Shown piece by piece: positions 6,297 to 8,306 of a DNA stretch of 64,000 bases (its first letter is position 1; every line of letters starts with the position of its first letter). The DNA is taken from sequence record OR699282.2; one strand, given 5' to 3'. The position numbers and the translations under genes were made by a program. The notes beneath the pieces were generated by a model. It searched no databases and was not told the DNA's origin. It saw only the letters and a list, made by a program, of their open reading frames with translations.

Positions 6297-6596
6297 ATGA
6301 AAATTGCAATCATCGCCCTGGCTTTATCTGTTTCCTCTTTCGCTGTTAATGCGTCGTTAGATGTGAGTAGTGAAAAATTCATTCAGTGCACTGTTGCGAT
6401 GACCAATGAAAGTACGGGCGAGATTGTTTTAAAGGATTTAGAGATCCAGCCACAAGCATTTAAAAACGGGCCGTTCCATGAAGAAGACGAAAACGGTAGC
6501 ACAACCATTTACTATGATGCCAGTACTAAACGCGGTTCGGTCACGGTTATGGATACTGAGAAAGTAACTCATACAGGCGTTATTAATTGCCGTTGA
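6297..6596 (+). CDS. hypothetical exported protein
   Basis: N-terminus MKIAIIALALSVSSFAVNA looks like a Sec signal peptide; two Cys. Confidence 0.75.
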   Translation: MKIAIIALALSVSSFAVNASLDVSSEKFIQCTVAMTNESTGEIVLKDLEIQPQAFKNGPFHEEDENGSTTIYYDASTKRGSVTVMDTEKVTHTGVINCR

Positions 6597-6617
6597 TTGA
6601 TACTACGGGGTAACATC

Positions 6618-6848
6618 ATGACAGCACGAATAGTTTTACTTAACGAAAGCAGTACTACACAACTACTTAACGCCGTGCATTATGATATTGAAACGAGCGT
6701 TAATCTTATCAGTACTGTCGTACTGTTGGACACTGGAAAGGTCGCCAATGATAAAGCGATTGCAGGTATACTAACGGATCTTGAGCCTGGTAGCAGTGCA
6801 CCAATAACGTTAAATGGTAAAGTGTTTAACATTTTACTTACTGATTAA
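6618..6848 (+). CDS. hypothetical protein
   Basis: ORF followed by terminator. Confidence 0.7.
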   Translation: MTARIVLLNESSTTQLLNAVHYDIETSVNLISTVVLLDTGKVANDKAIAGILTDLEPGSSAPITLNGKVFNILLTD

Positions 6849-6854
6849 GTACAT

Positions 6855-6876
6855 AGCCCACCTGGTGGGCTTTTTT
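6855..6876 (+). terminator. intrinsic terminator
   Basis: AGCCCAC-CTG-GTGGGCT then T-tract. Confidence 0.85.
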
Positions 6877-6965
6877 GTTTTTGTAGTATCGTAGTACTGA
6901 GATACTTTGAAAATAGTTTTAAAAAAGTAGTTGACATTACCGCAGAAAAGCGTAGAATGTATTAC

Positions 6966-7038
6966 ATCAAGACGGGGAGCACTAAGTAGACCGCCAGTAA
7001 GTCGAACGAAAAACTGGACACGTCGAGAAAACTTTGAT
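6966..7038 (+). ncRNA. structured leader, variant of the three-way-junction RNA
   Basis: ATCAAG/TTTGAT closing stem, shared TAAGTAG and CCAG-TAAG-N4-ACGAAAAA-CTGG modules. Confidence 0.4.
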
Positions 7039-7081
7039 ACACTAATAAACGTAAACTAAACTTTAATTGAGGATTTATAAA

Positions 7082-7564
7082 ATGGCTAATGTAAAATCAT
7101 TCATCAAAGCACTGGTAGCAAATGAAACTAACGTCGCGGCTGAGATCCTGGCTGAACTGGATAACGATACCATGAAAGCGGTACGCAATAATTTTAACAT
7201 CGCGTACAGTACTGCGAAAGAACTACAAGCAAATAAAGCGGCAGAAATTGAAGCGGCAAAGGCGGCCCGTGAAGCAGAACTACAAGCAACAATCGAAAGT
7301 ATTCAGGCGGCAGTAGTTGGATTGGATCTGGAAGTAGTTACAGAGATGGCACAAAAAGCCCTGGCGGTTAAGTATGGGGAAGACAAGCCAGAAGTAAAAG
7401 CCAAAAAATGGATTCAGGAACGCGTAGCGGTAGTACTGGACAACGGGGAAGAATATCTGATTCCGGTGCGTGGTAACTGTATTGCGGTAGTACTGGACGC
7501 GATTAACTCCAGTGGTATGACTCGCGAGGAATGGATCGAAGCTCATCGCAAAGTTGAAGCATAA
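7082..7564 (+). CDS. H-NS/StpA-like protein (diverged)
   Basis: Helical N-terminus, Ala/Glu-rich central helix, C-terminus LDNGEEYLIPVRGNCIAVVLDAINSSGMTREEW aligns by eye to H-NS [34 protein letters not shown]. Confidence 0.6.
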   Translation: MANVKSFIKALVANETNVAAEILAELDNDTMKAVRNNFNIAYSTAKELQANKAAEIEAAKAAREAELQATIESIQAAVVGLDLEVVTEMAQKALAVKYGEDKPEVKAKKWIQERVAVVLDNGEEYLIPVRGNCIAVVLDAINSSGMTREEWIEAHRKVEA

Positions 7565-7585
7565 CAATTAAAGTACTGAATCACT

Positions 7586-7612
7586 AGCCCACCTTAAACG
7601 GTGGGCTTTTTT
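7586..7612 (+). terminator. intrinsic terminator
   Basis: AGCCCACC-TTAAAC-GGTGGGCT then T-tract. Confidence 0.85.
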
Positions 7613-7849
7613 GTGTTTATCGTTTACCAGGCCACCAGCACCGCCTAGAAACGATTCTAACGCATTAAACTGATTATCTGATGCATTGCCCTAGCTGGTG
7701 GCGTTAAGGTCGTTGTAATGCGATTGAGAGCGTTTAAAGTATTTTGCAAAAAGTAATAAAAAGTACTTGCACGATTAAGAGATTAGCGTATAATGTTTTA
7801 CATCGAGAGGGGGAAACGGTTCTCCTTCCAAATCAAAGGAATCAAAACA

Positions 7850-8077
7850 ATGGCTATTATCATTACTCGCGTATCTGGTACTACTGGCAACGAACAAGTA
7901 GTTGCAGTCATTACCAACAAGGAAGGTGCGGAATTGCAAAATGCAATGAATACCTGGGCCGTTAATGAGTTCGGTCAGTGGGCAAGTGTAGCATACATTG
8001 AAACCTATCAAGTGCCGTCGATTAGTTTAACTGATTTGGGCGTTGAGCGTATCCTTTGCCTGGATGAATTAAATTAA
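7850..8077 (+). CDS. hypothetical early protein
   Basis: Promoter 7767, SD AAGGA. Confidence 0.8.
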   Translation: MAIIITRVSGTTGNEQVVAVITNKEGAELQNAMNTWAVNEFGQWASVAYIETYQVPSISLTDLGVERILCLDELN

Positions 8078-8162
8078 AAAAGTACTTGCAAAGTAAATCG
8101 AATAAAGTATAATACATTACATCAAGGGGAGAAATGATTCTCCCCACTACAAGGAAACTAAT

Positions 8163-8306
8163 ATGAAAACTTGTCAATGTGGTCAGAAATCTATTACTGG
8201 TTTAAAGCGGGGCGTTGCTCTTTGCCAGTACCATTATAATTTACAAGTATGGGGTAAAGAATGGGCCGACCAGGTGGAAGCAGCAAAGAAAGCAAAAAGT
8301 AAGTAA
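8163..8306 (+). CDS. small Cys-containing protein, 47 aa
   Basis: MKTCQCG..LCQYH; promoter 8086 and SD AAGGA; below the ORF track cutoff. Confidence 0.7.
   Translation: MKTCQCGQKSITGLKRGVALCQYHYNLQVWGKEWADQVEAAKKAKSK

Follow-up and report, generated by a model that had tools for sequence, protein, structure and literature searches.

A probable, deeply diverged H-NS-family protein encoded in the terminal repeat of Asteriusvirus jumbo coliphages

H-NS silences AT-rich foreign DNA, and T7 gp5.5 and T4 Arn are early phage proteins that counter the host's H-NS-family silencing. A small gene in a 64,000-nucleotide stretch of sequence record OR699282.2 (the window; gene at 7082-7564) raises a related question: does a lytic jumbo phage carry a homolog of the silencer itself and, if so, what would it be used for? 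The phage genome is AT-rich (31-41% GC), with GC fractions of 0.30-0.41 along the window, and PHROGs places the protein in phrog_27871, a family of unknown function. The gene is real and under strong purifying selection; a comparison of five Asteriusvirus orthologs gave dN/dS values of 0.06-0.17 for each half of the gene and 0.05-0.16 for the region encoding the C-terminal domain (CTD).

The gene lies within the ~21-kb direct terminal repeat (DTR) of an Asteriusvirus jumbo coliphage. The segment of the window from 6800 to 7800 is found with 100% identity and at matching coordinates in Escherichia phage BAU.Micro_ELP-22, and with 88-99% identity in 36 other Asteriusvirus jumbo coliphages (including phAPEC6, PBECO4/121Q relatives, and fEgEco12). 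In phage vB_Ec-M-J the ortholog (EcMJ_013) is annotated within a 21,525-bp direct terminal repeat. The ortholog in fEgEco12 encodes a protein that is 100% identical; this phage, with a genome of 35.8% GC, has a 20,993-bp terminal repeat that restriction digests confirm (PMC13070987). The ortholog in phAPEC6 is gp528, which the main text of the phAPEC6 paper does not name as a virion protein.

The family extends well beyond these coliphages. A word search retrieved just 21 close homologs; an HMM search run exhaustively over 1.84 billion representatives retrieved 15, with identities down to 27%, and these come from metagenome contigs, where they sit in arrays of small genes that share one strand. 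Using tblastn, we located further members in Klebsiella phages (RaK2/K64-1, fENko-Kae01), Salmonella phages (Munch/SE_PL/PHA46), Pectobacterium phage CBB, Yersinia phage fHe-Yen9-04, Cronobacter phage GAP32, the Erwinia pEa_SNUABM phages, Hallingskeid, and Serratia phage BF. Most of these lie no more than a few kb from the start of the record or inside annotated terminal repeats; the gene is in the DTR in vB_Ec-M-J, fENko-Kae01, and CBB and close to the record starts in other genera; because this placement is shared across phages, the family is a hallmark early-region gene of Rak2-like jumbo phages. Only G80, G131, and N132 are invariant family-wide; R114, K97, G122, G145, and I152 are nearly invariant.

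The gene is a self-contained unit because it has its own promoter, Shine-Dalgarno sequence, and terminator, and because the gene upstream ends in a terminator of its own (Table 1). The first-pass annotation had described both a structured leader and a terminator. The terminator folds well, but the leader folds no better than shuffled sequences (z +1.03; second run, z -0.85 to +1.2), so only half of that description stands. A near-identical stem (AGCCCACC...GGTGGGCT followed by a T tract) is present in both flanking terminators, at 6855-6871 and 7586-7607. The leader opens with TTACATCAAGACGGGG (from 6962, 3 nt upstream of the leader start), which resembles how the leader of the following gene begins; the same opening words, TTACATCRAGASGGGG, are found in both (6962-6977 and 7798-7813). 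The next gene's leader contains a 9-bp hairpin (z -2.2); no such hairpin is present in the leader of the gene at 7082-7564.

Table 1. Features of the gene and its product (P0001) in window coordinates; residue numbers refer to the protein.
Feature	Position	Strand	Basis
Terminator of upstream gene	6855-6871		
Sigma-70-type promoter, TTGACA - 16 nt - TAGAAT, 11/12 matches	6931..6958	+	
5' leader, ~117 nt; predicted start	6965..7081	+	start inferred from -10 box
Shine-Dalgarno GAGGA, 8 nt 5' of ATG	7069..7073	+	direct sequence reading
CDS, 160 aa; probable divergent H-NS-family protein	7082..7564	+	ORF call, profile and structure comparison
N-terminal domain, residues 1-100: acidic, all-helical, four helices, one of ~50 residues	7082..7381	+	full-length model, profile alignment, charge, ESM Atlas
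Linker, residues 101-113 (KPEVKAKKW...), mildly basic	7382..7420	+	model, charge
C-terminal domain, residues 114-155: β-β-α-α, H-NS/MvaT/Ler DNA-binding-domain fold	7421..7546	+	model, Foldseek, VIA
Loop R130-G131-N132, opposite H-NS Q112-G113-R114	7469..7477	+	alignment
Intrinsic terminator: 8-bp GC-rich stem, T tract	7586..7617	+	folds well, z -3.25

Single-family searches with the protein and its relatives remain below threshold. P0001 has no match in Pfam, and neither it nor 10 distant homologs match PF00816 at E≤10; a six-frame search of the related 121Q record for PF00816 returned nothing; the NCBIfam scan of P0001 gave no family match; and phmmer and hmmsearch found no significant match among PDB sequences. 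A simple H-NS HMM applied to the ORFs in the window did not recover the gene (E 0.21). The sole match to PF22470 (Histone_HNS_N) is that of a distant family member (P0027), at 21.5 bits (cut-off 24.5; E 2e-4).

Profile-profile comparison points to homology to H-NS over dimerization site 2, the linker, and the DNA-binding domain. Using hhalign, the family alignment matches an alignment of 20 H-NS, StpA, and plasmid-H-NS sequences with a probability of 79.6% (E 1.5e-5, score 37.9); with E. coli H-NS alone, the probability is 47.7%. The match comprises 80 collinear columns that place residues ~69-154 of the query on H-NS 56-135; the DNA-binding domain is covered in full, and residues ~69-100 (GLDLEVV...) are paired with site 2 (residues 56-83). 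The score is well separated from the controls: column-shuffled H-NS gave 12.0 ± 2.5 (maximum 19.6), the column-shuffled query gave 10.9 ± 2.1 (maximum 17.9), none of 300 shuffles reached the real score, and the reversed H-NS profile gave 23.8. In the C-terminal part, which aligns without gaps, conserved positions coincide (phage/H-NS: G122/G104, G131/G113, G145/G127, W151/F133, I152/L134, and R114/K96). The CTD alone matches H-NS at just 17.7% because it is too short for hhalign. Residues 1-72 have no significant similarity to H-NS 1-58 (site 1; score 12.1, shuffle maximum 14.2).

The predicted structures were compared with H-NS at two levels. The full-length AlphaFold model is poor (pLDDT 61.7), and a Foldseek search with it returned nothing. 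Its elements (helices 2-12, 16-24, 28-77, and 83-97; strands 114-118 and 124-128; helices 133-144 and 148-154) follow the order of those in H-NS, in agreement with the H-NS-like architecture proposed from the letters alone. For the CTD, the alignment was rebuilt from DNA references (12 diverse members); the resulting AlphaFold model (pLDDT 79.2) has strands at 114-118 and 124-128 and helices at 135-144 and 148-155. This is the β-β-α-(3-10/α) fold of the H-NS, Ler, and MvaT domains, albeit at modest scores (E 1.4; Z 3.6). When the model was used to search 350,542 PDB chains with Foldseek, the first-ranked match was the CTD of Salmonella H-NS (2l93; TM 0.41/0.46, rmsd 3.0, 38 columns); 1hnr was ranked 5 and Ler (2lev) was ranked 50. 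VIA-align, which is independent of Foldseek, identified only 6 of 48,161 representatives at Z≥2; the MvaT CTD-DNA complex was ranked 1 (2mxf; rmsd 2.9, 44/47 residues) at a Z of 3.6, and, according to the VIA notes, Z under 8 may signify merely a common arrangement. Ler (2lev) was ranked 4, and a second-look run puts Ler first. The Foldseek E of 1.4 is not significant; this value and the Z of 3.6 are as expected for a domain of only ~45 residues.

The ESM Atlas contains its own model of the exact protein, and the nearest cluster to this model is an H-NS family cluster (PF22470 99%, PF00816 72%) with TM 0.51/0.52 over 118 aligned residues (residues 3-150); further neighbors are one PF00816 cluster and one PF22470 cluster. 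In the BFVD viral fold library, only the family's own members were retrieved. The distribution of charge also resembles that in H-NS, that is, an acidic N-terminal part, a basic linker, and a near-neutral CTD (-5.5, +1.8, and -1.2 in the phage protein; -6.5, +4.5, and +0.8 in H-NS), and the phage protein is acidic overall (pI 4.9). With four methods each ranking the H-NS superfamily first and no single score decisive, we regard homology to H-NS as quite likely; the shuffle-controlled profile-profile match, the two fold searches with the CTD model, and the ESM Atlas neighbors all support the initial description of an H-NS-like protein.

The first-pass annotation had also noted that the minor-groove motif of H-NS, TWTGQGR, reads LIPVRGN in the phage protein. 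The gap-free hhalign alignment agrees: LIPVRGN (residues 126-132; 7457-7477) is placed on H-NS T108-R114, with G131-N132 on G113-R114. The AT-hook-like Q/R-G-R motif is absent; the loop is R130-G131-N132 in this protein and x-G-N family-wide. G131 and N132 are the most conserved residues of the CTD, the only invariant ones apart from one Ile, and they hold over sequences with identities down to 27%. Position 130 (Gln112 in H-NS) is invariantly R within Asteriusvirus and is S, T, K, N, or H, that is, polar, elsewhere in the family.

MvaT provides a precedent for this loop. In its KGGNH loop, Gly99-Asn100 is inserted into the minor groove (Ding et al., PMC4466236); Asn100 superposes on Arg114 of H-NS, the N100A substitution weakens binding and abolishes repression, and Arg80, at the N-terminal edge of the domain, stands in for the missing Gln/Arg (PMC4466236). 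The phage Gly-Asn, at the position of H-NS G113-R114, occupies the place that superposes on MvaT G99-N100. Because the Gly-Asn is invariant and matches this MvaT contact, the loop is more likely to be a functional variant than to have been inactivated; "rewritten" is an apt description of it. The near-invariant R114, located at the start of strand 1 opposite H-NS K96, may be the counterpart of MvaT Arg80 or Lys83, with the H-NS alignment pairing it with K96. Judged by its residues, the loop looks like a cross between the Q/R-G-R hook of H-NS/Lsr2 and the G-N half-hook of MvaT.

Membership in the MvaT/MvaU family was considered and ruled out by sequence: hhalign with an MvaT alignment seeded from pCAR1 Pmr gave 0.5% and 0.3%, with the caveat that the control comparison of H-NS with MvaT also fails (5.3%). 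Pfam PF22055 (MvaT_DBD) has no match. By sequence, the family is closer to H-NS than to MvaT, and the Gly-Asn shared with MvaT is thus probably a parallel solution.

How does the protein compare with known silencers and their antagonists? With H-NS/StpA of Enterobacterales (PF22470 + PF00816), it shares a helical N-terminal domain, a linker, and a ~45-residue β-β-α-α domain, as well as the collinear profile match to H-NS 56-135, the coinciding glycines and aromatic residue, and a similar charge layout. Unlike H-NS/StpA, it is under the Pfam thresholds, is 23 residues longer, has an unrecognizable site 1, has R-G-N instead of Q-G-R and a less basic linker, and is encoded by a lytic jumbo phage. 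With MvaT/MvaU of Pseudomonas (PF22055; 2mxf), it shares Gly-Asn at the groove-inserting position, and the MvaT CTD-DNA complex is its best VIA match; as in MvaT, the second C-terminal element is modeled as an α helix (148-155), whereas H-NS has a 3-10 helix. However, there is no profile similarity to MvaT (0.5%, although H-NS and MvaT themselves give only 5.3%), and the phage loop has the length of the H-NS loop, whereas KGGNH in MvaT is two residues shorter. Ler of the LEE island (2lev) also has an H-NS-type CTD on a different coiled-coil N-terminus; unlike the phage protein, Ler still has Arg in its groove motif, is encoded on a chromosome or an island, and is experimentally supported.

Silencer homologs encoded by mobile elements are known to modulate the silencing of AT-rich DNA, e.g., EPV1 H-NS (PMC3097231) and CgpS/Lsr2 of prophages, Sfh, and Pmr (PMC7074111), and the phage protein resembles these as a member of a host silencer family encoded by a mobile element. 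EPV1 H-NS, CgpS, Sfh, and Pmr, however, are close, easily recognized homologs, mostly from temperate elements and plasmids; the phage family is a deep, phage-only branch found in lytic jumbo phages. Mip of phage LUZ24 is an early protein directed against the host's H-NS-family silencing (PMC8501957). Mip, gp5.5, and Arn bind the silencer but are not related to it, being small folds or DNA mimics, whereas the protein described here would itself be a silencer homolog. A literature search found no paper joining H-NS with Asteriusvirus, RaK2, PBECO4, 121Q, or GAP32; phage and plasmid silencer homologs and phage inhibitors of H-NS-family proteins are known, but none of the searchable papers describes an H-NS branch that is deep, restricted to phages, and characterized by a Gly-Asn loop in lytic jumbo phages.

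Starting from the homology, fold, conservation, selection, and gene context, we propose DNA binding, oligomerization, a time of action, and an effect on host H-NS. The chances are about even, in our judgment, that the protein is a highly diverged H-NS-superfamily nucleoid-associated protein that binds AT-rich DNA and controls H-NS-type silencing of the phage genome. Given the position in the DTR and the host-type promoter, the gene could be transcribed by host RNA polymerase immediately upon DNA entry. The acidic, helical N-terminal domain would form oligomers, and the CTD would bind the AT-rich minor groove through Arg130-Gly131-Asn132. The most likely use would be the control of H-NS-type silencing on a genome of 31-41% GC, either by competing with host H-NS/StpA for occupancy of the DNA, as for Ler, or by entering mixed filaments via the site-2-like helix-turn-helix; in either case, host silencing would probably be met by a nucleoid protein of the phage's own. 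Ler is an anti-silencer that displaces H-NS from DNA. By analogy, Ler would be the closest functional model, and Ler-style anti-silencing is plausible for the phage protein. Our confidence is kept modest by several counterweights, i.e., the sub-threshold searches, the weak single structural scores, the low hhalign probability of the CTD alone, the lack of significant similarity to site 1, Asn as the third groove residue, the less basic linker, and the acidity of the whole protein. A more specific version, in which this phage-only branch, produced within minutes of infection, coats AT-rich phage DNA and excludes H-NS/StpA, so that the protein would form a self-made protective nucleoid instead of being a mere inhibitor, is a tentative possibility; if true, the coat might also bar nucleases or other DNA-targeting defenses.

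The same gene could instead encode a dominant-negative poison, i.e., its N-terminal domain would enter H-NS/StpA oligomers, its loop would not bind DNA, and the silencing filaments would break, as with H-NST and truncated H-NS. The AT-rich genome and the early placement of the gene are compatible with such a poison, the detectable similarity spans H-NS dimerization site 2, and H-NS homologs that are truncated or consist of the N-terminal part alone are established antagonists (PMC7074111). The poison fits less well because the CTD is fully conserved, whereas H-NST and other known poisons have no such domain (PMC7074111): the full domain is retained under strong selection, the G-N of the loop is the most conserved element in the protein, which is unexpected for a disabled domain, and site 1 has no similarity to H-NS. 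We consider the poison unlikely. The resemblance to H-NS might also amount to no more than a small fold in common and a coiled coil, in a protein that does not bind DNA but has another host or phage partner; that every single score is sub-threshold or modest, that the protein is acidic, and that a VIA Z under 8 may be a common arrangement only are as this explanation would have it. Its difficulty is that each of four independent methods, with 48 thousand to 7.7 million candidates to choose from, puts the H-NS superfamily at the top, that the match is collinear over two modules with coinciding conserved glycines and aromatic residue, and that the shuffle controls never came near the real score; we judge a fold-only resemblance improbable.

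Under the reading that we prefer, a diverged H-NS-superfamily protein that controls silencing, an entire clade of lytic 350-kb phages would maintain an H-NS homolog that is full-length but deeply diverged, with its gene one of the first to reach the host cell, and this homolog would independently carry the Gly-Asn groove contact of Pseudomonas MvaT. This reading suggests that chromatin proteins of their own may serve to handle host silencing in jumbo phages that lack a nucleus-like shell, and the family would provide a natural experiment for the effect of the Q/RGR to GN change on the recognition of AT-rich DNA. It also provides a testable function and a name for a conserved "hypothetical protein" (phrog_27871 and the related phrog_20181).

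The protein had been suggested in addition as a sequence-specific binder of the palindrome AGTACT, which occurs 255 times in the window (17.5 expected). The palindrome has a TpA step at its center, and MvaT-type domains prefer flexible TpA and tolerate G:C interruptions (PMC4466236). However, H-NS-type domains read the shape of the minor groove and not a 6-bp palindrome, a dimeric recognition element is absent, many copies belong to an extended -35 element, and the three sites within the gene are absent or variable in orthologs; such binding is very hard to credit. AGTACT, with a ~12-15-fold excess, is the only strongly over-represented palindromic hexamer in the window (1-64000). Its extended form is C-AGTACT-G; AAAAGTACTTGC accounts for 11 copies, which overlap -35 boxes. 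The region 32-36 kb contains no copy. Six GC-rich palindromes are present at 0 copies, i.e., CCATGG, AGGCCT, AGCGCT, and ACCGGT (5.9 expected each) and CCGCGG and CCCGGG (1.6 each).

Contigs from wastewater, soil, and other RNA libraries in several studies cover positions 6300-8300 at 90-100% identity; contigs cannot establish transcription, and DNA may be present in such libraries. In one run (X4), coverage is absent from the terminator (~7640) to ~7707 and resumes near the next promoter; the gap is a hint of transcript-shaped coverage. In one metatranscriptome contig, position 7612 connects back to 6902; here the assembler most likely jumped through the shared terminator repeat.

No paralog of the gene was found within the window. 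An uncultured relative encodes two 197-residue paralogs on one contig (L009:698-1291 and L009:2047-2640) with one small gene between them; the second of these (P0029) is 66-68% identical to its counterparts in the Salmonella phages PHA46 and SE_PL (tblastn).
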